NCBI GenBank assembly: GCA_037447605.1
Contig: CM074817.1
Location: 62,001 to 126,000, forward strand
Source: Zygnema circumcarinatum SAG 698-1b
Taxonomy: Eukaryota; Plantae; Zygnematophyceae
Direction: 5' to 3'
DNA length: 64,000 nt
Below, one piece after another: positions 7,574 through 64,000 of the stretch. Under the pieces are notes generated by a model, which did no database searches, had not been told where the DNA came from, and saw only the letters and a list, made by a program, of their open reading frames with translations. Made by a program: the position numbers and the translations under genes. The stretch's first letter is position 1, and each line of letters starts with the position of its first letter.

Positions 7574-9370
7574 TCACTTCTCCAGTAAAATGGGAGACCC
7601 TGGCGACTGCCGGCTCTCCAAGGGTCCCCTTGGGGACTTAGTGCGTCTTCGCCCCTCCCCCCATCCACACAAATACGTTTCTTTCTCTCCCTCTACTCCA
7701 CTCAGTGACTCCCCTCCACTCCTTTTCCTCACATCCCCTTCCCACTCACTCTCCTCCTCATTCGCTCTCTCTGTTCGACAAGCAGCCTTTCGCTTCCGAT
7801 ACTGCGGAACCCGGAAGGAAGCCTCTCCCTTCCCCCCTTTCCCTCCTTTCTTCTCCACAGACATTGTGGAGCATATGTCGACAAAGTCTCTTTCAGAGGT
7901 TTTCTGTGTGACTTGCACTCTCCTTCCCCAAGCTATCTGCTCCGCCATAGGCACCTCCTCCCTCCTTTCTCTCCCTGCAGCCTGAACTCCTCCCTCTCCT
8001 CCACTCTTCACTCTCTTCACCACTCCCTCCACCTCCCTCTCTCCACTCCTCTCCATCTCTCTCAAAAACGTCACCTCCATACCCTCCACTTCCTTCTTCT
8101 CCTCCTCTGCCTCTTCTCCCACTACCACCACCACCTCTTCTTCCTGCTCCATGACTACTTCCTCTCCCTCCCCCTCTCCCACTCCTAATCCCTCTCCCTC
8201 CCTCTCCCTCCCGCAGAACATAGAAAACCACTCATCTTTCAGCACCTCCTCCGCGGTGGGTCTGACCTCCTCCATCGACAGCATTCTCCGAATGAGCTTT
8301 TTTGCAGCCTCCGAAACCTCCCCCCATGGATGCTCAGAAAAATCTACCACCCCCTTCTTTATAGCCTCAAAAATCAACTTCTCACTGGGGCCCCAGAATG
8401 GGGGCACCCCACACAATAATATATACAAAACTACCCCCAAAGACCAAACATCTGCCTTCTTCCCATAGGACTCTCCACACACCACCTCCGGGGCCATATA
8501 AAATGGCGACCCAGCCATCCCCTTCACCTCCTCCTCCCCCTCCAAAAACAAAGCGAGCCCAAAATCCGCCACCTTCACTGTCGTCGTAATTTTGGTCAAA
8601 TTCGCGGTTCCCACCTCCCATTTCTCCTTAATTAAGAGATTCTCCGGCTTCAAATCGCGATGAATCACATTGTTCCTGTGCATGTGAGCCACTACACCGC
8701 AAATTCCTCCAAACATTTGCGCCGCCTTCGCTTCCGAGTAATGCTTCACGGCCAATATCTGATCATACAGCTCCCCTCCTTCACATATCTCCATCACCAA
8801 ATGTACGGCCTCTCTGTCTTCTAGCGCCTCCTTCATCTGCACCACATTGGGGTGCCCCGAAAGCGCCGACAAAATCTCTATCTCTCTCCGCACATCCTCT
8901 CTCTCCCCCTCCGACTTCATCGCGCTCTTCTCCAACGTTTTACATGCGAACCTCTCGCCAGTTTTCAGTTCCGTGCAGGCCCGCACCACCCCATAGTGGC
9001 CCCTCCCCAGCTCCTCCTTCAGCTCGAAGGAGCTTCGCACGTGTGGGGTCTGCGAGCGCAGGACAGCTGTCGACTGCTCATTGGTCCGCCAGATCGTTCT
9101 TCGCACCTTGCGGTTACTCCAGCAGGGGAGGGGGAGGGAGGTGGGAGAGGGGGAGGGAGAGGGGGAGGGAGAGGGGGAGAAGCTGCTACTCTCTCTCTCG
9201 GCCTCTCTCGCTGGGTAGGAGGGGACCACATCTCTCCTCCTCACTCTCAAACTCCGCCTTTGTTTCTTCATGGGCTGCTCCACTACCACGTTCTCCTCCA
9301 TCCTGCGAGACTCCTCCCTCCTCCTCTTCTGTAACTCCATCATCTCCCTCTCACTGTATCCCCCTCTCAC
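7574..9370 (-). CDS. Intronless CAMK-group Ser/Thr kinase, CDPK/PEPKR-like, without EF-hands
   Basis: 598-aa ORF with GRGHYG, FACK, HRDLKPEN, DFG, APE and DVWSLGVVLYILLCGVPPFWG. The C-terminus is Glu-rich and no EF-hand motifs are visible. Confidence 0.9.
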   Translation of the reverse strand: MRGGYSEREMMELQKRRREESRRMEENVVVEQPMKKQRRSLRVRRRDVVPSYPAREAERESSSFSPSPSPSPSPSPTSLPLPCWSNRKVRRTIWRTNEQSTAVLRSQTPHVRSSFELKEELGRGHYGVVRACTELKTGERFACKTLEKSAMKSEGEREDVRREIEILSALSGHPNVVQMKEALEDREAVHLVMEICEGGELYDQILAVKHYSEAKAAQMFGGICGVVAHMHRNNVIHRDLKPENLLIKEKWEVGTANLTKITTTVKVADFGLALFLEGEEEVKGMAGSPFYMAPEVVCGESYGKKADVWSLGVVLYILLCGVPPFWGPSEKLIFEAIKKGVVDFSEHPWGEVSEAAKKLIRRMLSMEEVRPTAEEVLKDEWFSMFCGREREGEGLGVGEGEGEEVVMEQEEEVVVVVGEEAEEEKKEVEGMEVTFLREMERSGEREVEGVVKRVKSGGEGGVQAAGRERREEVPMAEQIAWGRRVQVTQKTSERDFVDICSTMSVEKKGGKGGKGEASFRVPQYRKRKAACRTERANEEESEWEGDVRKRSGGESLSGVEGEKETYLCGWGEGRRRTKSPRGPLESRQSPGSPILLEK

Positions 9371-18704: not shown

Positions 18705-22854
<4,150 letters not shown>

Positions 22855-43842: not shown

Positions 43843-46800
43843 TTACTCTGTCACATTAGGTCCCGTCTTCTTGTTGCGAAAGCTTTCCTTCAATGAGCCA
43901 AACTTCCTGAAACACTGCGCCTTAGTTTTTCCAGGCACAGCTGCTGCTATGCGTTCCCATCTGCATTTCAACAGGGCAGAAAGTTCTTTTCATCAGTATA
44001 AGACCCTGTACAATTGCCTGCTGAATCCCAAAGGAGGTTATAGCAATAATGTCGACCTAAGCTCAGTGAAACAGGATGATTATTTCAAACAAAAATTAGA
44101 GTCCAGATTCTGCTCACCTATTCTCCGTCTCCTTCGGGAATGCTTTCAATGCCTTCACAAGAGCGAGTTCCTGTGCCTCTGACCAACTGGGAGCATCCCC
44201 ATCCCCTCCACTGCTTGGGGAACTCTTCACAGCACTAAGGGGACTCGCACTCTCCTCCTTCATAGTTCCATTCGGTGTCCCTTCACTCTTCTCTTTACCC
44301 TTCTTGTCGTCTGGGGATCTTGGTTCTACATGGTTGGAGTCCACACCATTAGAAGCCTCCTGTGCCTTTCCCTTCACAGCTTTTGCCCCTTTGCTTTCTG
44401 CTCCCTTTACGCCATTGGCTGTCGGAGAGGAGAGAGTCACAGAATCGGCTGCTTCATCCCGTGTGGAGAGTGGGGATGCTATGTCCTTCGGATTCTTACG
44501 CTTCTGCAGAGCATCGCATCAGATGGGCTTTAAGATGTATTCAAGCTAAACAAAATAGGCGCCAGAAAATTATCAACAAGGGCGGGACAACAAGTCGCCA
44601 GAGTCATAAACCTGAGCAATCCAAGCAGTCAAATGAAGAGATGGATAGGCGTGTGAAAAAGGGGAGTGGAGAAGGGAGGGGGGAGGGGATGTGGGGCCGC
44701 TGAGGGCATTCAAAGTAGAGTGAACATGGATACACGGTAAAGGTAAGGAAATTCTCACCAGCAGAAACGAATCAAATGCCTTGGAGTCATCTGGTTTCTG
44801 AAGCAATACAGTCTTCACAGCTTTCAGAATCTCTTCTACAGTTCGTCCTGTGCCAATGTACTCAGAAATAACTTCCCAGCGTTGGCTTGTCCCCTTGGGA
44901 TACTTGGTCAGCCCTTTCCTCAACAAATCTACTTCTTCCTTAGGCCACGGCCTCTCTTTCTTCCCTTCTGCCTGTTTCTTTGCATCTGGCGTTTTACTTT
45001 GCCCCGCCTTCTTTCCGTCAGTTCCTTTCTTTCCGTCCCCTCCCTTCACTTCCGCCCCCTTTGCAACTCCATTCGCTCCACCCTCCTTATGCTCTTTTCC
45101 ACTACTTCCATGCAGAACCCCATTCTGCAATGTGCCACCTGGCTTCGCCTCATTGGGCCTCGGTCCCCCAGAGGCTGCGAACTCCGCATCTGCTGCCTCC
45201 TCTGCCTCCGCATCGCCAGCTGGCACAATTCCATCCCATTGTCCCTCTTCCACAACCACTCCATGCCATCTCCGGAGAGTGATGGCCCTCCTCCCTGCAT
45301 CAGAAAATGTCTCAATGCGTTCGCACAAAGCTTTAATCTGCTCAATATCTAATGAATGGCAAAGCGTTTCAACATGGTCATCAGATACTCCCCAGGGCTG
45401 CGCAATGCAGTCTGTGGAAGCTGTCCTCAGTCGGGACCTCTCTTTTCGCAGCAGCTTCTTCTCCTTCTCCTTCACTTTCCTTAGCTGAGCAGCCTCCTCT
45501 GCTGCTCGCTTATCTTCTTCGTCCTTTCTCACTCTCTCCTCCTCTGCTGCTTTCTTCTCCTCTTCCTCCGCAGCTCGCTTCGCCGCATTCTTCATTTCCT
45601 TCTTCCGCTGCTTCTCCTTTTTCTCATCCTCCTTCCGCTTCGAGATTCGAGGATCTCGTCGATACGCGTTCTCCACCAGAGTCCGAATTCGAGAATTTTC
45701 CTCTTTTTTTGCCTTCTCTCTCAACTTCGAATTTTGCCGCTCCATCCATCTCTTATGCTCCCGGCTCTCTGCCGATTCTATATCAAACTCATCCTCATTC
45801 GGAAACTCTCTCCAGGACTTGAAGCTCCACCAAAAGTCGTAGAATTTATCCACTTCTTCCATTGGGGTGTCGGTATCCCCAGGCATCATGGCAGGCTGGT
45901 GCACAGACCACCTTCCATTTCGCATAAATACAGGTCCGAATACTTTGAAAAATTCTTCGGAGGAACAATCTGAAGGCACGTAGTCATCGAACTCATCCGT
46001 AGAATCGAAGTTTCGGCGTTTCACCGGGTCTGTCAAAACCTCGTATGCTGTCTGAATTGCCTTAAACCGCGTCTCGATTTCTTCCTTCTTCACCGCCTTC
46101 GCCTCCTCCGTCTCCTCCTCAAGAAGCAGTGCAGCCTGCTTATCGGGATGGTGCTTCAAGGCTGCGTCTCTGAACAGTGCAGCAAAATAGAAAACCAACC
46201 CGTTGCAAAATTAATCACAATAGCACAGTATGTAGCTGCTGCTATGGGACCTTTACTAGTGATTTACGAAGAGCAACTAGCAACAGCTCAGCTATGTATG
46301 CATGATAAGTTCATTCGCTTATCGCAAGAGACTGCATAGAAAAAATCAAATTCAAAATAAAGCAAACGTGCTGCTATGTCGACAAAAAGCATGGCTTGAT
46401 CATGGTCGAAAGAAGTCACCATTTAAGTAAAAGCAATCGTGATCTCTGCCTAACATCCTATGGCATGGTTTGGGTTGCATATCAAAATGACGCTTTGCTG
46501 CGACATGGAATCCTGGAAGAAAGGCTACAAAAACAGAAACTATTTTATGAAAGGGACCATTTCCTCTAACCCGCCACCGAGGGGGAACACCTGTCAACTC
46601 CTGCAACTAAACTACAGTAAGAGAAAACATGAAATCACACCTTCAAATACATCAATGACTTCTAAATACTGAAAGGGAACTGACTCCGACCAGAGGAATA
46701 GGGGCGGGGCAGGGGAAAGGAGACACAGAAAAGGGAGAGAGAGAGGGCGAGAGCGAGAGAGAGGGGAGAGAAGCTTACAAACAATACTACTCCACGACAT

Positions 46801-48901: not shown

Positions 48902-50132
48902 ATGTCTCTTCATATGTACACGCAGTGGCGCCTTCTCCCTCTCGCAGCAGTAATTTATTACTTTGCACATGCTTCTGTTGCCTCCGCACTCTATGGAGGG
49001 CTCTCAGGGACTACCACCGCCACGTGGTATGGGGCTCCTGAAGGCGACGGATCGGACGGTATGTCCGATTAATATTAAACTATATAAATTTCTATTTTTT
49101 TATTCTATAAAAAATTCTTCGATGAAATAGGCTGATCGCAACGAAAAATTTCATGTTGAGAGTTCTCCTTTGACCTTTCCCTTCTATTTGGCGCATTTTC
49201 TAATCCATATACAGAGCTGAATGCCCCCTTTCTTTCCTGCAGGCGGAGCTTGCGGCTATGGGCCCCTCTCCCACACTCCATATCAAGCGTTTATTGTCGC
49301 TGGGAGCGCCCCCCTCTTTTTGAATGGAGCCGGGTGTGGAGCATGCTACCAGGTAACGCTCTCCCTTCCGCTCCCTGTCCCACTCCCACTCCCTCTTCCA
49401 TTCCCACTCCCACTCCCTCTGCCTCTCTCACTCTCTCTCCCACCCACTCCCACTCCCTCTTCCACTCCCACCTCACTCTCACTCTCACTCTCTCACTCCC
49501 ACTCCCACTCCCACTCCCACTCCCTCTCCCACTCCCACTCCCACTCCCTCTCCCACTCCCTCTCCCTCTCCCTCCCAGCAAGCCCTCCCTATCCTCCCCT
49601 CATTCTAACCCCCCCTCCACGCAGTCACCATTTCCGCCAGCTCTCGAACGGGCTCCCTCCCTTGCAGACGGACACAAACGATCCAAAAGGATCCTAAACT
49701 CGCGCGATTGACGAGTCCCTTGGTAAATCCTGACCGTCGATGCTGCGGTTGGGCGGGCGGACGGAATCGGTTGGGGGCAGGTCCAGTGCACGAGCAGCAG
49801 CCTGTGCTCGGCGACGGGCGTCGTGGTCGCGGTGACCGACCTCTGTCCGGGCGGCGACTTCTGCGGCGGCGGCAACACGCACTTCGACCTGAGCGGGGCG
49901 GCCTTCGGGGCGCTGGCGGTGCCGGGGCGGGCCAATGACCTGCGGACACTTGGCGTGCTCACCGTCGCCTACGACCGGTAGGCGCACGCCCCAACGGCCA
50001 ACACTCTCACTACGGACACCGCCCTCGCCCTCTTTCTCTCTCTTCGAGCAAGGGCTGAACTGAACTCATGTGAAGTGAAGCCTGCTTTGGAAAAAGCTCC
50101 ATTTCATTGGTGAGTAGTTTTCGAAGGTTAAA

Positions 50133-50173
<41 letters not shown>

Positions 50174-53100
50174 GTGTATCCGCATTGTGTGGTGGCAGAA
50201 CGCCATGCAACTTCCCGGGTCGGAATCTATTCTTGGAAATCTTGCCGGGATTCAATCCGTATTATGTTGGGGTTGTACCTGGCGGAGGAGCCGGCCCCGG
50301 GTCCGTGGCAGCCATGGCTATCAAACAGGTGAGGAAGGCGCGTGCTTGTTGGCTCCGGGTCATTCTCTGGTAAAGAACCAAACCGGCGCACACAAAATTT
50401 TAGTCATGCATGTGGCCAATATAGTCAGTTTGCTCGTAATTTGTTGCTCAAACATAGTTTAAGCTTATCGTTATTCATGTTTGCAGTCGACCTCGCCAAC
50501 TTTCCAACCTTTGACAAAGGACTGGGGAGCTTCTTTCATCCTTCAGTCTCCGACTCCTATGAGCGGTCCCTTTACCGTCCAAATTACTGCTGGTGCTACA
50601 GGTGCCTATTGCCATTACTTAGCTTAAAAGAAGCTCAAAGCTGAGTACGTTAATCACACAAATCAAACAACGAAAAAAACACTGACTAATTTGAAATTCT
50701 GCTCGTTTCAGGTGAAGTCATTACTTGTCCGAATACCATTCCAAGCTCCTTCGTTGCTGGGTATTTATACGACTGTGGAGCTCAGTTTTCAAGTGGAGCG
50801 GACACTGTAACTCCAGTGCCTGCGTCCCCCCTAATAGCAAGTTCTCCACCTCCTTTACGTTCACCTCCACTTCCTTCACCTTCGCCCCCTCCTCCATCTT
50901 TGCCTTCGCCCCCTCCTCCATCTTTGCCTTCGCCCCCTCCTCCATCTTCACCTTCGCCCCCTCCTCCATCTTCACCTTCGCCCCCTCCTCCATCTTCACC
51001 TTCGCCTTCGCCCCCTCCTCCATCTTCACCTTCGCCCCCTCCTCCATCTTCACCTTCGCCCCCTCCTCCATCTTCACCTTCGCCCCCTCCTCCATCTTCA
51101 CCTTCGCCCCCTCCTCCATCTTCACCTTCGCCCCCTCCTCCATCTTCACTTTCGCCCCCTCCATCTTCGCCTTCGCCCCCTCCTCCATCTTCACCTTCGC
51201 CCCTCCTCCATCTTCACCTTCGCCCCCTCCTCCATCTTTGCCTTCGCCCCCTCCTCCATCTTCACCTTCGCCCCTCCTCCATCTTTGCCTTCGCCCCCTC
51301 CTCCATCTTTGCCTTCGCCCCCTCCTCCATCTTTGCCTTCGCCCCCTCCTCCATCTTCACCTTCGCCCCCTCCTCCATCTTTGCCTTCGCCCCCTCCTCC
51401 ATCTTTGCCTTCGCCCCCTCCTCCATCTTCACCTTCGCCCCTCCTCCATCTTCACCTTCGCCCCCTCCTCCATCTTCACCTTCGCCCCCTCCTCCATCTT
51501 TGCCTTCGCCCCCTCCTCCATCTTCACCTTCGCCCCCTCCTCCATCTTTGCCTTCGCCCCCTCCTCCATCTTCACCTTCGCCCCCTCCTCCATCTTCACC
51601 TTCGCCCCCTCCTCCATCTTTGCCTTCGCCCCCTCCTCCATCTTTGCCTTCGCCCCCTCCTCCATCTTTGCCTTCGCCCCCTCCTCCATCTTTGCCTTCG
51701 CCCCCTCCTCCATCTTTGCCTTCGCCCCCTCCTCCATCTTCACCTTCGCCCCCTCCTCCATCTTCACCTTCGCCCCCTCCTCCATCTTCACCTTCGCCCC
51801 CTCCTCCATCTTTGCCTTCGCCCCCTCCTCCATCTTTGCCTTCGCCCCCTCCTCCATCTTTGCCTTCGCCCCCTCCTCCATCTTCACCTTCGCCCCCTCC
51901 TCCATCTTCACCTTCGCCCCCTCCTCCATCTTCACCTTCGCCCCCTCCTCCATCTTCACCTTCGCCCCCTCCTCCATCTTTGCCTTCGCCCCCTCCTCCA
52001 TCTTCACCTTCGCCCCCTCCTCCATCTTCACCTTCGCCCCCTCCATCTTCACCTTCGCCCCCTCCTCCATCTTTGCCTTCGCCCCCTCCTCCATCTTTGC
52101 CTTCGCCCCCTCCTCCATCTTCACCTTCGCCCCCTCCTCCATCTTTGCCTTCGCCCCCTCCTCCATCTTTGCCTTCGCCCCCTCCTCCATCTTTGCCTTC
52201 GCCCCCTCCTCCATCTTTGCCTTCGCCCCCTCCTCCATCTTCACCTTCGCCCCTCCTCCATCTTCACCTTCGCCCCTCCTCCATCTTCACCTTCGCCCCT
52301 CCTCCATCCATCTTCACCTTCGCCCCCTCCTCCATCTTTGCCTTCGCCCCCTCCTCCATCTTCACCTTCGCCCCCTCCTCCATCTTCACCTTCGCCCCCT
52401 CCTCCATCTTCACCTTCGCCCCCTCCTCCATCTTCACCTTCGCCCCTCCTCCATCTTCACCTTCGCCCCTCCTCCATCTTCACCTTCGCCCCCTCCTCCA
52501 TCTTCACCTTCGCCCCCTCCTCCATCTTTGCCTTCGCCCCCTCCTCCATCTTTGCCTTCGCCCCCTCCTCCATCTTTGCCTTCGCCCCCTCCTCCATCTT
52601 CACCTTCGCCACCTCCTCCATCTTTGCCTTCGCCCCCTCCTCCATCTTCACCTTCGCCCCCTCCTCCATCTTCACCTTCGCCCCCTCCTCCATCTTCACC
52701 TTCGCCCCCTCCTCCATCTTTGCCTTCGCCCCCTCCTCCATCTTCACCTTCGCCCCCTCCTCCATCTTTGCCTTCGCCCCCTCCTCCATCTTCACCTTCG
52801 CCCCCTCCTCCATCTTCACCTTCGCCCCCTCCTCCATCTTCACCTTCGCCCCCTCCTCCATCTTCACCTTCGCCCCCTCCTCCATCTTCACCTTCGCCCC
52901 CTCCTCCATCTTCACCTTCGCCCCCTCCTCCATCTTCACCTTCGCCCCCTCCTCCATCTTCACCTTCGCCCCTCCTCCATCTTCACCTTCGCCCCCTCCT
53001 CCATCTTCACCTTCGCCCCTCCTCCATCTTCTCCTTCGCCCCCTCCTCCATCTTCACCTTCGCCCCCTCCTCCATCTTCACCTTCGCCCCCTCCTCCATC

Positions 53101-53336
53101 TTCACCTTCGCCCCCTCCTCCATCTTCACCTTCGCCCCTCCTCCATCTTCACCTTCGCCCCTCCTCCATCTTCACCTTCGCCCCCTCCTCCATCTTTGCC
53201 TTCGCCCCCTCCTCCATCTTTGCCTTCGCCCCCTCCTCCATCTTCACTTTCGCCCCCTCCATCTTCACCTTCGCCCCCTCCTCCATCTTCACCTTCGCCC
53301 CTCCTCCATCTTCATTTGATGGCCTCACCATCTTGA
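48902..53336 (+). CDS. Beta-expansin-like protein fused to a long Ser-Pro4 extensin-like tail (3' end uncertain)
   Basis: Exons 48902-49058, 49243-49352, 49781-49977, 50199-50328, 50487-50601 and 50712 onward give a signal peptide, [54 protein letters not shown] and [18 protein letters not shown]. The frame continues directly into (S/L)PSPPPPS repeats. Confidence 0.88.
50874..53313 (+). repeat. Coding 24-bp minisatellite, ~100 units (TCA/TTG CCT TCG CCC CCT CCT CCA TCT)
   Basis: Two main variants (Ser/Leu), some in-frame 21-bp units, and about a dozen 23-bp units with a C5-to-C4 change. Confidence 0.95.
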
Positions 53337-54502
53337 GACCAATGCAAATCCCCTTTTCTTTTGTCGCACATTGTTGGAAGTCAATAGTGAAAAGGAGAAA
53401 ACGAGGGGGGTGGAATGTCCAGAAAAAGAGGAGGGGAGGGGAGGAGGGGAGGGGAGGGGAGGGCCGGGGAGGACAGGGCAGGGGAGGGGAGGGAAGGGGA
53501 GGGGAGGGGAGGGGAGGGTCGGGGAGGACAGGGCCGGGGAGGACAGGGCAAGGGAGGGGAGGGGAGGGGAGGGGAGGAGAGGGCAGGGGATGGGCGGGAG
53601 CGGAGGGGACGGGAGGGGCGGGAAAAAGATTTTTTCCCGAAATTTTCAAAACTGGGGGGTACCAAAACGGGCAGGCAAAATTTTCAAAAGGGGGGTGCGA
53701 AAGACAAAACGCGGGGGTGCAGTAGAGTTACCCCAACGGATTCATGCGAAAAATTGAAAGGGCATTTACCGCGACTAGCTTGTCGATTGCCCGAACAAAT
53801 CACCAAACAGGCCTTTGTCCGTACACATTGAACAATTAATTATCGTTCGTGTTCAACTTGAGTTTTCCTTGGGTCCACCGACCAACCATGAGATTTTAGA
53901 GAATCGCAAAGCGCGTGGACCCTCTTGTTTGTACAGAAATTGTTGATCAGCTCCCGGGAAGAGTCGTACGGCAAAAATGGGGCCTGGGTTAACTCAATCC
54001 CTCGAATCGCACAGAACCAACGTGGCGAAAATTGGAATCCACACGTGCGACCGAACACATCGAGTCTTGAACTTTATTTTCCTTTAAAACTTTACGCTTT
54101 CTTAAATCGAAAGAATTTCGACCTCGAGTGTTCAGAGTTGAACCATAAGGGGGAGTCAGCCTGTCGGGCGAATTAAGCATTGGCAAGGTACGCATTTCGG
54201 TACGGCTGTGAACGGCGGAGCCGCGGATCCCGATCCGGAATTCGTACACGAAAGAAGTCTGACTCCCCCTATGAGATTCAATGAGATTGAAAATTGAGAA
54301 ATTAAATAAACTAGTCCGTACACCTGATTCGTCCTTATTTTGATTGTCGTACTGTATTATATAACGGATGGCCCGGATCTGGAACTAAATGAAAGTTTCC
54401 TTTGATCTGGATTTGTCTGTAAGACTCCAGGACAGTTGTGAAAGACAGCATCCGTACGAAAAGTCCAGAATTCGTCGCCGTTCGGCCAATCGTTGACTGT
54501 CA

Positions 54503-54936: not shown

Positions 54937-56494
54937 ATGATAATTTCCATCAAGTTAGTAACGGTTTTGCTTCTAGTAAGTGCTGCCAGATTTCCTGCAT
55001 CGGCAAGCACAAGAAATCTGCGGACTGTCGCTACTATCCAAAGGGAGGGAGACGAAACTCCGACGGTGATTCGGAGAAGCCTCACCGAAAATACGAGTAA
55101 GGACAATACTTAACTTATGGTTGCCAACTTTCTTTCCCTCGCTCCAGTAATTTAACCACTTTGCTGCTGGTTTCCTTAATCCCTCTCTCTTTATATTTTC
55201 CGTTCCAATCCTTTCCTTTTCATTCTGGAGGGAGGGACGAGGGGGGCACAACCCCACTCCTCAACCTCCCTTTCAGGCCCCATGCTCACCCCTTTCACTG
55301 CATTTCCCCTTCCCCTGCAAGACGATGCTTTTTTTTTTGACAGTGAACTCAGCAGACAGGCAGCATATTGATTATTCCACTTTGATAATTGATATTTCTT
55401 ATGTCTGCGTTGTGCCTTTCTCCCGTAACATGTGCGCGCATGATTCAGCTACGGCAAGCACGCCAGCAAACACTGAATCTTCTGATCCATCGGTGGACGT
55501 GCTCGCTGCTCTCAATCGCTTCATTGGGACCATTAGAGGTCTGTTTCCCGTTGTTCGCCTCTTCAAGCATTTCTTAAGTAACATCTGCCATTGAATGTGA
55601 TATAAAAAACCACCATACAACATAATGGTAATTCTAACTTCAAGCACTTTCAGTGCAGACGTGGTAGTCCCATCAAACAATGACACGTCATCCCCGATTG
55701 CGGCGATTGTAAATGGTACATTAAGCAATAGCACAAACTCGACAGGGGCTCCCCAAGGGAGCAATGTCACAGATTCAACGAATATGGGGACTTCGACTTC
55801 TAGCTCCATCGGAATGCCCTTCGCATTCAATGTTTTTGTGTTCGGAGCCCCTGTTCAAGCAATAAGCCTTTTGTCAACAGGCAATAAGGGCTTAGAGCAA
55901 ATGCTTATTCAATCGAGCCAATCATCAGCGACCGCAGATGGGCAAAGTACCATTCAGCAATACGCCCCACAGCGAGAAAGCGTGGGCTCGTCTTCAGGCG
56001 GCAGCGACTCCTCAAGTAACTCCAGCTCCGAGGCCAGTGCCAATAGCACCATTTCTTCGTACAATTCAACAAGCACAAATCCTTCGAGTGGAAACACATC
56101 GTTGAACCAGATCGAGTACACCATTGCAAATGTGGTTGATCAACTGAAGTTGAGAACACGATTTCTGGATGACGAGATGAACCTGACTAGGACAGCACTA
56201 GCAAGTGCGCAACAGTTGCAATTGCAACAAAGGAACGTGACAGAGGAGCTGAAGAGCAGGTACAAGAAAGAAGCAGCGGAGTCGGAATCATCTGAGCAGC
56301 AATTGCAGAAAAGACAGGCGAAGGAGCGGGGTCAATTGGAAAAGGATCAGAGAGCGGGAGCAACTAAACTTCTGGAGAAGTTTGATTCTGAGCGAGGAAG
56401 GCTACTTCAGCAAGAAGAGAGGAAAATGCTGCAGTTGCAGCAACAGCAACAGCAACATCAATTGACCTATAACTCGACAAATGATGGGACATGA
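54937..56494 (+). CDS. Secreted Ser/Thr/Asn-rich orphan protein with a C-terminal coiled coil (three exons)
   Basis: The signal-like start MIISIKLVTVLLLVSAA lies in exon 54937-55096. Exon 55344 (or 55449)-55538 and exon 55659-56494 both join in phase 1. There are 12 N-x-S/T sequons and a Q/E/K/R heptad-like C-terminus. Confidence 0.72.
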
Positions 56495-57452: not shown

Positions 57453-60301
57453 TTACTCCTTTGTGTCAAAATCAGTAAGGTTCTTCTGCGGGCCTTTGAA
57501 GTCGAAGATGCTTCTTGGAAGCAGCCATGGGATGGTGATGAGGATCATGACGCCCCCGAGAACAATCGGCGCATAATTGAGAGTCTTAGCTGTGACGGGA
57601 TAAATGGTAGGAAGAGAGAAAACTACGGTAATGAATGCGACCCACAGAATGGCGATAGAGTTCACGAGCACACTGAAATTCCCCAGGTGGAAGGGGCCCT
57701 TTACAAAGGTCTTTCTGCTGACTGTCATCTTCATGAGAATGGGAATGGCGCAAGCCACGTATACTCCAACTGTTGAGAAGGAAGACAGAGCTGTGAAGGC
57801 GACGGGGCTCCAAATGATAGGCAGCACGAAGAGCAACATTCCTGCGAATGTGAGGGCGACAGCTGGGAGGGGGACTTTGTTCTTGGGGGTGACTTGCATC
57901 CAAATGGACGAGAAGGGTGTGGCTCCATCACGGCTCATAGCCCACATCTGCGAGAGAGGTAGCGAGAATGAGAGAGATGGGTTCATTAGATCAGGGAGTA
58001 ATCAAAGGTTTCACACATCACTTAGGACACATTGCGCAACAGAAGTACATTCTTCTTCATGAGAATCCAAGACCTTGCTAGTATTCCTCCGAATAAAGGC
58101 AAAAAGGAAAATGTTTGAGTGGTGCGCATCGCTCACCAAGCGAGCTACGGCACATCCGCCGGTCGCCATTGCGAAGGGATTCACTAGCAGGAAGCAGGCA
58201 ACTACAACAGTTGCGCCCTTCCCAGTACCAAAACGTGCTTCAAAGACATCGTAAATGAGTTGTAGACCGGGGTAAAGACCGAGCGTTATATTCTCCGGAT
58301 TCTGCAAGTTAAGGGGGTCTTGCATACTGCACGCACACAGGTGACATATGATCATTTTTCCATCTTGTCACACGTACATTCACATGGTTTGCTAGTATTT
58401 TTGATCGTGTCCGTAGCGGCAAGATAGACTCATAGATGTACATGTACATTAGAAAATAAATGTGATGGAAAGACAATGAACCATCATGGGGGGTGGGGTG
58501 GGGGGGAAAGAGAGAGAGGAAAGGAGAGAAAATAGAGAGAAGAGAGTGGAAGGCATAGGGAGAACTGCCTACCTGAAAAGAAAACTTAGGAGAATACCAA
58601 ATCCTACTACCATGCTCGTGGCAGTTGACAGAACGGTGCTCCATGCTGCCGCCGAGTCGCTCTTTATCGTCTCTTCCGACAGATGGCCGTTTAGATCAAA
58701 GCCAACGAAGCAGAACTGAGAAAAGAGAAGGCCAACAAAGAACAGGTAGGCACGCGAATCTATTCCCAGAAACTCCCCGTTGTCGATAAATTCCGTGAAC
58801 ACGTAAGAAACTGATTGGTGGGTGGGGGCGATAGCAGGAAGGCCTATGAGAAGAAATAGAGCCAAAAGCAAGTTCCAAACTGAGGCGAACTCGGCGAGGA
58901 GTCCAATGCACCAGACTGGCATGAGGTTCGAGACGAATCCCAAAACGACAATTCCACAGCAGATTGCGAAAACGACTCTGCTTGAGAATGTGCACGACGA
59001 GCCAGACATTTGTATTACGGTAACTATGAACTGAGCGAAGATGTAAGTTCCCGCTCCGTAGCCGGCAACGTAACCAAGCCAGTTGAACCATCTGCCACGA
59101 TTAACAACAAAAAAGTAGCAAGATTCGCTGAAGATCGTAAGTATCTCAGCAAGCATTAGATATTGGCTGTTCTTTCGACTCAGGGAGAGAAAATAAGTAC
59201 AAAAGGGAAAATAATCTGCTTTACTGGGATTGATACTGAGAGAGGGAGAGCTGGAAACAAGTAGAGGGAGAGAGGTGGGCGAATTAGTAGAGGGAGTGGG
59301 ACACTGAACAAGGAGGAAGGAGAAAAAGAGAGAGAGAGGCAACCGAGTACAAGGACGAGCAGAGAAACGGTGGGAGAAAGCGAGGGACAGGTGAGATTAA
59401 GGAGAGGGAGGAGGGAGCGGGAGAGCAGGCGGGAAGGAGGGAGGCAGTGAGAGGAGCGAAAGGAGAGTAGAGGAGGAACAATCAGTGAAGCAGAGACAGA
59501 CTTCAGGTATAAAGGCAATGTGCGCTGAATCTCCTCACATGGAATGGCCAATACGAAAAGAAAGGCAGCACTTTTAAGAAAATGCAAAATAAATAGATCA
59601 AATTACAAAAACAAGAAATAAATTTTCCCAATTCCGGGGCCAGCATGAAAAGGGGCGGCGCTGACCCAGTGTACCAGCAGGCGACCTTTCCCCATTTCTC
59701 CCCGCCGAGGTGGTACGCGTGGTAGTAGATTCCACCCGACGTCTGGATCCACCACACCAGTTCCACTCAACTATTCAACTCAGCGCCGCAGCGTCACACA
59801 GAGTCGCCAAATCACTCACTTTCGGCTATGTTGACCAATTCAATTAGTCGGTCGGTAAAAACTAACCAATAGACTACAGCAATTACTATGACTAAGTACA
59901 AATATGAAGGCTGAATACGTACGGGCAGCGAGGAGAGAATCTCCGCCAGCGAGAGCACGACCGTCATAGTGAAGGCGCAGACGAGGACCCACCCCCACAC
60001 CATCGTGACCGGCCCTCCGTACGTGAACCCGATCGTGAAGAGGGCGGGGATGGCGACCGGCGTCGACAAGGTCGCAGCGAGGCAGCAGAAGGCCATCACC
60101 GAGCTCTGCATGCATGCATGCATTCACAAGCAAGTCATCAGGCCGTGTCATGCCATGTCATGCCATGCCTTGCCATATTTTGCTCGGCCATGCCATGCAG
60201 TGTCATGTCACGTGGCCCACCAGCTCGCGCTTCAGCGTCTGCTTGTAGCCGAGATCGTTGAGGCGTTTCTCGCCGGAATCCATGACCACCAGTTCCACCA
60301 T
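57453..60301 (-). CDS. APC-family amino acid/GABA permease (BAT1-like)
   Basis: MDSGEKRLNDLGYKQTLKREL, GGPVTMVWGW, LSLAEILSSLP|TSGGIYY, WYTG|WFN, GFDLNGHLSEET, WAMSRDGATPFS, GPFHLG and LPTIYPVTAKTLNYAP. Multiple TM segments. Confidence 0.93.
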
Positions 60302-61338: not shown

Positions 61339-63687
61339 TTACACAACCCTAAAGGTGGCGCCACCCCCCACATTTTGGTACCCAAACCCATCGAAGGACC
61401 CCTTGGGTTTGAGAGGGAAGGCGTAGGAGGGCAGAGTGTAGCGGTTTCCTCCCAAAGGAACAATGTTGTAAGAGGAGAGAGGGCGGTAATTTGTGGCCTC
61501 CACTACCAAAGCAAGAAGGGGCTTTGTGCCGATGTTCTTGAAGCTCACAGAGTACGAAAAGACAGTGCTTTTGCCATCCGGGGAGGGATACTTTGACAGC
61601 AATTTCTGCGAAATAATGACTGTTGGGCCCCCTGCATGGGAAGTTCAATAGAGCAGATGTCGTCAGAGAGCTTCTTAATGCTCGGAATTAGTCTGTAAGG
61701 TGTCTCGATTTTTGCTATTTTTTTTTTTTTTTTTTTTTTTAATGAAAGGAATTGAGAGTTGCCAGAAATCAAAAAGTTTATGCATGGCACTATTTTTTTT
61801 GTTTGTTTTTTATTTGAGGTCAAAATGCCTCTACCTTTTGATGGAGGCGAGCCCTTTGGCGGAGGGCGAGCAGTCCTTGAGGGCGTGGGGGCTCCTCTCG
61901 AGAATTGGGCCCCGCAGTCATACAATTTCCCGGCAACGAATGCGGTCGGAATTTTATTTGGGCATGTGATCACTTCACCTGAAATTGCACAAAATCAAAA
62001 GCATAGTTAAAGCCTGCATGAATACCACCACGGTTAAGTAAAATATGGAAGGAAATAATAGCCCATCAGCTTCACAAGTTACTATGCGCATAGTTCAATA
62101 CATGCTATAATTCGTAAGGGAATAGACAATTAAACAAACAAATTATATAAGTTCGATTTGAAGCAAAGCTAAATTTACATAGCAGCTTATTAAAAATGTC
62201 TCAAACCTGTTGCGCTTGCGGTGAGCCGGACTGTGAAGGGACCCGTCAAGGGCGTCGAGGAGAGCAGGGAAAAGGATGCGCCCCAATCCTTTGCCAACGG
62301 TTGGAAGCTCGCTTTCTTCGCCTAAACCCGCACAAGTGAAGGGATGGGGAGGAGCGGGAAAACGAGACAGGGAGAAATAAGAGAGGGAGAGAGTGAGAGA
62401 GTGAGAGAGCGAGAGAGGGACGCAATAGTACGATTTCAAAACAAAGCACATATTCGTCCTTGTTCTTAGCGAACCGAACGAATTAAGAACTAAGTGGTTA
62501 AAGTTACAATGGTTCCGAGTGTAATTCACACCTATCCACACAAGAACGACCCACGAAGTCAAGCCCGCAAGCCGCCCCATCACCATCAAAAGAAGCTTCG
62601 CCAACAAGCACGCGCCTTCCTCACCTGTTTGATAGCCATGGCTGCCACGGACCCGGGGCCGGCTCCTCCGCCCGGTACAACCCCAACATAGTAGGCATTG
62701 AATCCCGGCAAAATTCGAAGCAACAAATTTTGGGACCCAAAGTTGCATGGCGTTCTGCCCCCACACAATACGGATTCAAACACACGTTTAGCCTTCCCTC
62801 TCCCTCTCCCTCTCCCTTCATGCGACCCTCTTCTCCCGCCTCCCTCTTTCACAAACCTTCCCAATAGAAGAGCAGGCTTCACTTCACATGAGTTCAGTTC
62901 AGCCCTTGCTTGCAGAGAGAGAGAGAGAGAGGGCGAGGGCGGTGCCCGTAGCGACAGTGTTGGCCGTTGGGGTGTGCGCGTACCGCTCGTAGGCGACGGT
63001 GAGCACGCCTAGTGTCCGCAGGTCATTGGCCCGCCCCGGCACCGCGAGCGCGCCGAAGGCCGCCCCTGAGAGGTCGAAGTGCGTGTTGCCGCCGCCGCAG
63101 AAGTCGCCGCCCGGGCAGAGGTCGGTCATCGCGACCGCGACGCCCGTCGCCGAGCACAGGCTGCTGCTCGTGCACTGGACCTGCCCCCAACCGATTCCGT
63201 CCGCCCGCCCAACCGCAGCATCGACGGTCAGGATTCGCCAAGGGACTCTTCAATCGTGCGAGTTCAGGATCCTTTTGGATCGTCTGTGTCTGTCTGGAAG
63301 GGAGGGATGCCGTTCGGGAGCTGGCGGAAATGGTGACTGCGTGCAGGGAGGGTTAGAATAAGGGGAGGATAGGGAGGGCTTGCTGGGAGGGGGAGGGAGA
63401 GGGGGAGGGAGTGGGAGAGGGAGTGGGAGTGGGAGTGGGAGAGGGAGTGGGAGTGGGAGTGGGAGAGGGAGTGGGAGTGGGAGTGGGAGAGGTAGTGGGA
63501 GTGAGAGTGGGAGTGGGAGTGAGAGAGGGAATGGGAGAGGAAGTGAGAGTGGCAGAGAAGGGTAAGTGGAGCTGTACTTTGTAGCACGCTCCACAGCCGG
63601 CTCCGTTTAAGAAGAGAGGAGCGGACCCAGCAGCGATAATTTTCTTGTAGGGAGTGGGCGAGAGAGGGCCATAGCCGCATGCTCCAC
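61339..63687 (-). CDS. Beta-expansin-like protein with a Pro linker and a C-terminal CBM49-like domain (exon 1 outside window)
   Basis: Exons 63687-63578 and 63180-62984, then ~62755-62626, ~62315-62206 and ~61978-61835, are paralogous to expansin 1. The donor AAAG|gtagag (61835) joins cag|GG (61631) in frame to [38 protein letters not shown]. Confidence 0.88.
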
Positions 63688-64000
63688 CTGCAGGAGGAAA
63701 AGGGGGGGGAGCTCACATTCAATAAAATGTAAATCACTCTCTCACTCTCTCTTCCTTACTCTCTCTCTCCCTCTCTCCCTCTCTCCCTCCCCCCCTCTCC
63801 CCCACTCTCCCTTCCCCTCTCCCTCTCCCCCTTTCTCTTTCTCTCTCCCCCACCTCTCTCCCCCTCTCACTTCTCTCACTCCCTTTCTTCTCTCTCCCTC
63901 TCTCCCCCTGTCTCTCTCTGTCTCTCTCTCCAAATCTCACTCTCTCTTCGTTCTGCATTCCGACTGAAAGTAAAACAAGACAGTAGTTAAACATTCCGAA

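Follow-up and report, generated by a model that had tools for sequence, protein, structure and literature searches.

Gene structure

We analysed a window of 64,000 nucleotides (nt) from the streptophyte alga Zygnema circumcarinatum SAG 698-1b (contig CM074817.1, positions 62,001 to 126,000); all positions below follow the numbering of this window. On its minus strand, at 63687-61339, lies an expansin gene whose terminal exon matches the family 49 of carbohydrate-binding modules (CBM49). The gene model has six exons with GT-AG borders throughout and one continuous reading frame (Table 1). Its translation runs from GACGYG and CGACYK through a cysteine-rich stretch and HFDLSG into a domain 2-like stretch, which ends in ...LYDCGAQF and is followed by a Pro-rich linker of 19 residues and a module of 96 residues. 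An earlier note, made from the letters of this DNA, had described an expansin fused to a third, CBM49-like domain, and its coordinates, linker and quoted peptide all proved correct when we re-checked the sequence and the frame.

The join between the expansin part and the module is the critical feature of the model. Exon 5 ends at 61835 with ...CATCAAAAG, followed by gtagag, and exon 6 begins at 61631 with GGGGCC, preceded by atgcag; joining the two exons retains the frame into the 96-codon exon. The borders and phase of the intron between them, proposed earlier as a 203-nt GT-AG intron leading in frame to the CBM exon, are thus confirmed. The true first exon, expected to encode the signal peptide, lies past the window end: two spliced contigs extend 170-179 nt upstream of 63688, off the window. 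GC content at third codon positions (GC3) is 0.94 in exon 2 versus 0.52-0.71 in the other exons.

Several simple-sequence tracts lie within the gene. Intron 5 contains, at 61708-61745 upstream of the CBM49 exon, an unbroken run of about 25 A on the gene strand, at which internal oligo-dT priming or premature polyadenylation could occur, complicating the reading of isoform ratios. A CT/GA-rich simple repeat in intron 3 (62356-62459) reaches a word depth of 450-1900 in the RNA runs and is joined there to many unrelated sequences, and transcription of this repeat class therefore occurs at many loci. Intron 1 and the region 63700-64000 are filled with comparable repeats of GA/CT-rich and CCCACT type.

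Table 1. Features of the expansin-CBM49 gene and of other genes in the 64,000-nt window
Feature	Position	Strand	Content
Exon 1 of the model	63578..63687	-	start of expansin domain 1, GACGYG...CGACYK; DPBB_1 profile positions 2-20; junction 63576/63178
Exon 2	62984..63180	-	domain 1 core including HFDLSG; DPBB_1; 2HCZ match; GC3 0.94
Exon 3	62625..62754	-	start of domain 2; junctions 62754/62984 and 62320/62624; 82% identical to paralogue exon
Exon 4	62207..62321	-	middle of domain 2 (Expansin_C / CBM63)
Exon 5	61835..61978	-	end of domain 2 (...LYDCGAQF) and proline-rich linker; junction 61976/62205
Intron 5	61632..61834	-	203 nt, GT-AG, phase 1, AT-rich, A25 run
Exon 6, terminal	61339..61631	-	96-residue CBM49 module, then stop; TAA at 61341-61339
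Paralogue	48902..53725	+	same expansin core, signal peptide, long Ser-Pro4 extensin-like tail, no linker and CBM49; end of tail uncertain
Lariat debranching enzyme C-terminal domain	1174-1902
Protein kinase	7574-9370
DEAH-type helicase fragment (Helicase_C and HA2)	20722-21693
Zuotin/DnaJC2	44573-46198

Transcription and splicing

Transcription was assessed with contigs of three public RNA runs of the same organism (X1, X2 and X3), which come from two studies. These contigs match the exons with 0 to 3 differences and lack all five introns, whose ends read CT..AC on the plus strand and hence GT..AG on the gene strand. Junction 62320/62624 was seen in all three runs, 63178/63576 in X2 and X3, 62754/62984 in X3 and 61976/62205 in X2. 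The junction between exons 5 and 6 (61630/61834), for which the earlier note had called for spliced reads across 61835/61631, is spanned by a single 172-nt contig of X1, with 142 nt in exon 6, 30 nt in exon 5 and a word depth of 4.2. In X2, exon 6 is represented by a 303-nt contig (61332-61633, depth 21) that stops at the acceptor site, and the depth of intron 5 is close to nil in both X2 and X3. X1 also contains unspliced pieces running into introns 2, 4 and 5, which could be pre-mRNA or DNA. The exon 5-exon 6 splice is real and thinly documented.

The CBM49 module

The terminal exon scored 26.1 bits on the Pfam family CBM49 (PF09478), for which the gathering score is 23.4 (E 1.1e-5; positions 14-77 of the 80-position profile), in agreement with the assignment proposed from the residue pattern. 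No other Pfam family, including CBM_2, CBM_1 and TPD1_C, was found on this exon at E values up to 10. A phmmer search of 1.84 billion representative proteins with the 96 residues returned seven matches at E < 1e-3, the best at E 1.6e-9. Five of them were scanned with Pfam. CBM49 is present in four (P0002, P0003, P0004 and P0007), of which one is a GH5 cellulase, two have the module at the C-terminus and one is a small secreted protein that has it twice; the remaining match is a repetitive Ig-domain protein. The nearest sequence matches to the module are CBM49 of amoebozoan type, with 33-39% identity, and the CBM49 modules of plant GH9C endoglucanases were absent from the matches at E < 1e-3.

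The module and its relatives share the alignment signature TN(W/Y)xP ... LPSY ... FGYQN.GG.A.F. At three columns that mostly hold Trp in the nearest relatives, the module has Tyr (Y14, Y48 and Y54 of the module), as the earlier note had remarked, and the Cys pair of these relatives is missing. One of the CBM49 proteins found by phmmer, P0003, likewise has Tyr or Phe at the three Trp columns. P0003 is a secreted-looking protein of 232 residues with two CBM49 modules, encoded at 554-1252 of a Logan contig (L001) of run SRR24319165. It may come from a related alga and may represent the kind of gene that donated the exon.

Structural comparison gave a similar assignment. The AlphaFold model of the module, built from a shallow alignment, is all-beta with a predicted local distance difference test score (pLDDT) of 83.4 and a predicted template modelling score (pTM) of 0.70. 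Among Swiss-Prot models searched with Foldseek, the best matches were the Dictyostelium stalk-specific proteins A and B (St15/StaA, StaB), with a template modelling score (TM) of 0.82, followed by the C-terminal CBM49 regions of Arabidopsis endoglucanases 19, 6 and 5 and rice endoglucanase 13 (TM 0.78-0.81). A fold like that of GH9C endoglucanases and Dictyostelium proteins, as suggested earlier, is thus borne out at TM 0.78-0.82. Bacterial CBM2 modules and TPD1 homologues (the latter at TM 0.68-0.69) appeared lower down. Cluster representatives of AFDB that match the module are mostly dictyostelid carbohydrate-binding proteins (TM up to 0.87), and a GH9+CBM49 cluster from streptophytes heads the structure search of the ESM Atlas. 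Among solved structures, matches by fold were CBM2 and chitin-binding relatives only (TM 0.62-0.69), and none matched the module by sequence.

The expansin core

Pfam scans and structure searches of the core were run exon by exon, on contiguous pieces. DPBB_1 was found on exon 2 with 33.5 bits against a cut-off of 28.8, and on exon 1 with 17.3 bits. On exon 4, a piece of 38 residues matched Expansin_C at positions 33-66 of the 78-position profile (E 1.5e-4), with 22.3 bits against a cut-off of 24.6. Exon 2 aligns to residues 76-135 of maize beta-expansin 1a (2HCZ; E 3e-5), as well as to 7XC8 and Phl p 1, and exon 4 aligns to residues 185-217 of 2HCZ (E 0.016); the order of the pieces is therefore collinear with a solved beta-expansin.

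Like the plant beta-expansins (maize EXPB1/Zea m 1, 2HCZ; Phl p 1, 1N10), the core combines GACGYG, conserved cysteines and HFDLSG with a following putative Expansin_C domain. It differs from them in that a linker and a third module come after domain 2, and in that its bearer is a streptophyte of algal grade rather than a land plant. Several positions of domain 2 that hold Trp in land-plant expansins appear to read Phe here. We also considered membership of the Expansin-like A (EXLA) group, whose members have a C-terminal extension. HFD is present in our protein and CDRC is not, and the extension is a folded CBM49 after an intron rather than an EXLA tail, so that this assignment was rejected.

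A neighbouring paralogue with an extensin-like tail

The window holds a second expansin gene, convergent with the CBM49 gene and about 8 kb from it, which has the same exon structure (Table 1). Its first exon encodes a hydrophobic signal-like peptide, then ...ATWYGAPEGDGSDG. The cores of the two proteins are about 85% identical, and exon 2 reaches 94% (tblastn). DNA identity is 82.5% over 1145 nt including introns 1 and 2 (63706-62600 versus 49224-50353) and fades from intron 3 on; the proteins agree at 65% of positions in exon 4. Such a mosaic suggests that the 5' half has undergone gene conversion.

The two proteins part directly after ...CGAQFS. In the paralogue, the same exon goes on to encode a tail that exceeds 900 residues and contains 48 SPPPP units. 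Some 150 residues at the end of this tail model look frame-drifted, so that the true 3' end may lie elsewhere or the tail may hold an intron. The paralogue is expressed: a loose end of X1 contigs at 62625 is the reverse complement of the start of its exon 4, joined to the shared exon 3 sequence.

Other genes in the window

The earlier note had regarded the expansin-CBM49 gene as one of the plant lineage. This view is supported by the zuotin gene of the same window (Table 1), which has only streptophyte best matches: the two highest are transcriptome proteins (71% and 66% identity), followed by Spirogloea muscicola (57%) and by proteins of bryophytes and seed plants (53-58%). These matches place the organism among the streptophytes, most likely as an alga. 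Two open reading frames lie in the interval that separates the expansin genes, at 55625-56494 (plus strand) and 58569-59342 (minus strand); one, of 289 residues, has no Pfam match, and the other encodes part of an amino-acid permease (AA_permease_2, E 3.6e-11).

Search for other expansin-CBM49 proteins

Neither the sequence nor the structure searches returned a second protein of this architecture. None of the seven phmmer matches of the module is an expansin, and a profile and word search with five CBM49 sequences gave eight proteins, none of which has DPBB_1. A scan of JGI metagenomes gave no match. Atlas searches from both the CBM49 and the expansin side yielded no cluster combining DPBB_1 with CBM49, although these compare whole proteins and are weak for this question, and the structure libraries contained no other expansin-CBM49 fusion. 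The negative is incomplete without a full-length spliced-protein query. The absence of relatives also partly reflects sampling: the proteins of the source organism are missing from the collection, and the window's own protein was therefore not returned.

Published surveys are in line with these results. A plant-wide survey of 2461 expansins in 64 species describes two domains and no added carbohydrate-binding module (PMC11547041), and the same holds for an expansin survey of bryophytes and two algae, where no added carbohydrate-binding module appears (PMC13493406). At most, uncharacterised C-terminal extensions are mentioned, in PpEXPA20 and MdEXP2 (PMC11547041, PMC13493406, PMC3191482). Among papers on expansin or DPBB together with CBM49, the few that were read contain no description of both in one protein, and the listed titles and abstract openings point to none. 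Thus the architecture looks undescribed, as the author of the earlier note had supposed, and it is not one already known as common in the protein, metagenome, structure or literature searches made here.

Discussion

We describe an expressed gene that very probably encodes a secreted wall protein of three modules, in which a beta-expansin-like domain 1 and a domain 2 are followed by a Pro-rich linker and a C-terminal CBM49. The continuous frame, the splicing of all five introns, the collinearity of the core with a solved beta-expansin and the agreement of Pfam and fold searches on the terminal exon carry this reading. A broader claim is more tentative, and we would put it at somewhat under even chances: that this is the first plant-lineage expansin with an added crystalline-cellulose-binding module, situated in a cluster where a recently duplicated core acquired different wall-anchoring modules, CBM49 in one copy and a Ser-Pro4 extensin tail in the other.

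Several points weigh against our interpretation. The first exon and the signal peptide of the gene lie outside the window. The decisive junction is represented by one contig with 30 nt on its short side, from a run that includes intron-containing pieces. The score of domain 2 is below the Pfam threshold in scans made only exon by exon, and that of CBM49 exceeds its cut-off by 2.7 bits. The Tyr row is a putative cellulose-binding array, read from alignment columns. Furthermore, no orthologue of the fusion was found that could reveal purifying selection on the module.

These points matter most for the possibility that CBM49 lies on a minor or alternative 3' exon, that the main product is a two-domain expansin, and that the fusion transcript is a low-level variant of a young, perhaps neutral, rearrangement. 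We consider this unlikely, though it is the alternative to be taken most seriously. Of the three positive runs, only X1 bridges the junction, by one contig; other X1 contigs run from exon 5 into intron 5, and into intron 4, at similar depth, and the lack of an orthologous fusion fits a young variant. The depth of exon 6 in X2 is about double that of exon 5, and coupling of the two exons is therefore not strict. However, X1 holds unspliced intron 2 as well, which makes its intron-bearing pieces look like a probable general carry-over of pre-mRNA or DNA, and the exon 6 contig of X2 ends exactly at the acceptor, with almost no depth in intron 5 in X2 and X3. Read-through would meet no stop within the intron and would give a frameshifted tail to 61545. 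The terminal exon retains an intact 96-codon frame with every CBM49 signature residue.

A different doubt concerns the module rather than its splicing: it might be a CBM2/CBM49-like beta-sandwich that does not bind cellulose and has another ligand, or a TPD1-like or structural role. The Tyr residues at all three Trp columns, the missing Cys pair, a Pfam score barely over the cut-off, the fold match of TPD1 homologues (TM 0.68-0.69) and the lack of a plant GH9C CBM49 among sequence matches at E < 1e-3 would all fit such a loss. Yet Tyr is accepted as a stacking residue of type A modules, and the columns in question hold Tyr or Phe in P0003 too; CBM49 folds match better (TM 0.78-0.87 versus 0.68 for TPD1), and Pfam gave no TPD1_C match. 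We therefore regard loss of binding as improbable, more so than a minor isoform. As for a mis-assembly joining two loci, or a chimeric contig, the gene has no independent annotation and the organism's proteins are missing from the collection, but the exons are matched by runs of two studies at 0 to 3 differences and the junction in the RNA coincides exactly with canonical GT-AG borders and keeps the frame, so that an artefact of this kind has only a minute chance of being the explanation.

Among known systems, the class C GH9 endoglucanases (tomato SlCel9C1, Arabidopsis GH9C1-3) are a close parallel within the same lineage, since they also carry a C-terminal module of the same family, by Pfam and by fold, after a linker. 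Compared with the modules of this class, ours has a TM of 0.78-0.80 and 20-27% identity. In those enzymes, however, the partner is a GH9 catalytic domain, whereas here it is a non-hydrolytic expansin, and the sequence of the module does not place it nearer to GH9C than to CBM49 of amoebozoan type. The best fold match (TM 0.82) and the nearest sequence type are instead found among the CBM49 wall proteins of Dictyostelium and Acanthamoeba (St15/StaA, StaB, Luke lectins) and the GH5-CBM49 cellulases. According to two papers, expansin-like and CBM49 proteins are separate gene products in those amoebae, encoded by separate genes in Dictyostelium (PMC9117722, PMC12821622).

The same idea of an expansin core, a flexible linker and a cellulose-binding module is realised in swollenin (CBM1), in bacterial EXLX proteins fused to CBM2, in fusions with GH5 or CBM32 and in the CBM2-expansin of cyst nematodes. 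The bearers of these microbial and nematode proteins attack or colonise walls, and the modules are CBM1 or CBM2 and often N-terminal; here, an endogenous wall protein of the plant lineage carries CBM49, which is structurally CBM2-like. A survey of such fusions lists only CBM1, CBM2, CBM32 and GH5 partners, in fungi and bacteria (bioRxiv 10.1101/637728). Our ESM Atlas structure matches also included a cluster of nematode DPBB proteins that bear a CBM2-like module. We rejected placement of the gene in the swollenin or bacterial expansin-CBM class: the module is CBM49 without a CBM_2 or CBM_1 match, and the core is plant beta-expansin-like.

How the fusion arose can be partly reconstructed. Exon shuffling had been proposed for it, and the module does occupy a separate terminal exon of phase 1; no gene that could have been the donor was found, and that mechanism stays an inference. 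A tblastn search of the window with the module, including the region downstream of the paralogue, revealed no second copy or remnant. Capture by a transposon was considered and set aside, as a repeat search around the exon gave only simple repeats and no terminal or inverted repeats. Because a sister gene 8 kb away keeps a core of about 85% identity with another tail, the evidence points to a duplicated core on which the C-terminal module was recently exchanged or gained. Most likely, the module was gained recently via capture of a CBM49-coding exon downstream of a proline-rich tail. The short Pro-rich linker may be what remains of an extensin-like tail.

The proposed function follows from what is reported of CBM49 and of expansin fusions. 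The cellulose-binding site consists of three aromatics in a row in CBM2, tomato CBM49 and the Acanthamoeba Luke lectins (PMC11423589), and the CBM49 of tomato SlCel9C1 is reported to bind crystalline cellulose (Urbanowicz et al. 2007, as cited in PMC12821622). In our protein, CBM49 would bind crystalline cellulose through a surface row of aromatics with Tyr in place of the Trp of its relatives. Tethered to the microfibrils in this way, or enriched on them, the expansin would have a higher affinity or a longer residence time, and the place and duration of wall loosening would change. Bacterial expansin-CBM2 proteins, swollenin with its CBM1 and the nematode CBM2-expansins are thought to act by such tethering. 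The extensin tail of the paralogue, in turn, would anchor the shared core in the wall's network of glycoproteins. Post-translational removal of the CBM49 module is also possible.

In summary, the finding concerns one gene of one species, for which no orthologue was detected, and it is best seen as a useful curiosity and an experimental handle that leaves the general picture of expansins unchanged. Extra carbohydrate-binding modules on expansins have so far been known only from wall-attacking microbes and nematodes, and the gene indicates that CBM49 has moved between wall proteins inside the plant lineage. Together with its extensin-tailed sister, it forms a matched natural pair for testing cellulose versus glycoprotein anchoring in wall loosening. 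If our interpretation is true, the pair would be a natural experiment on tethering and would supply ready-made constructs for asking whether the mobility of expansins limits loosening.

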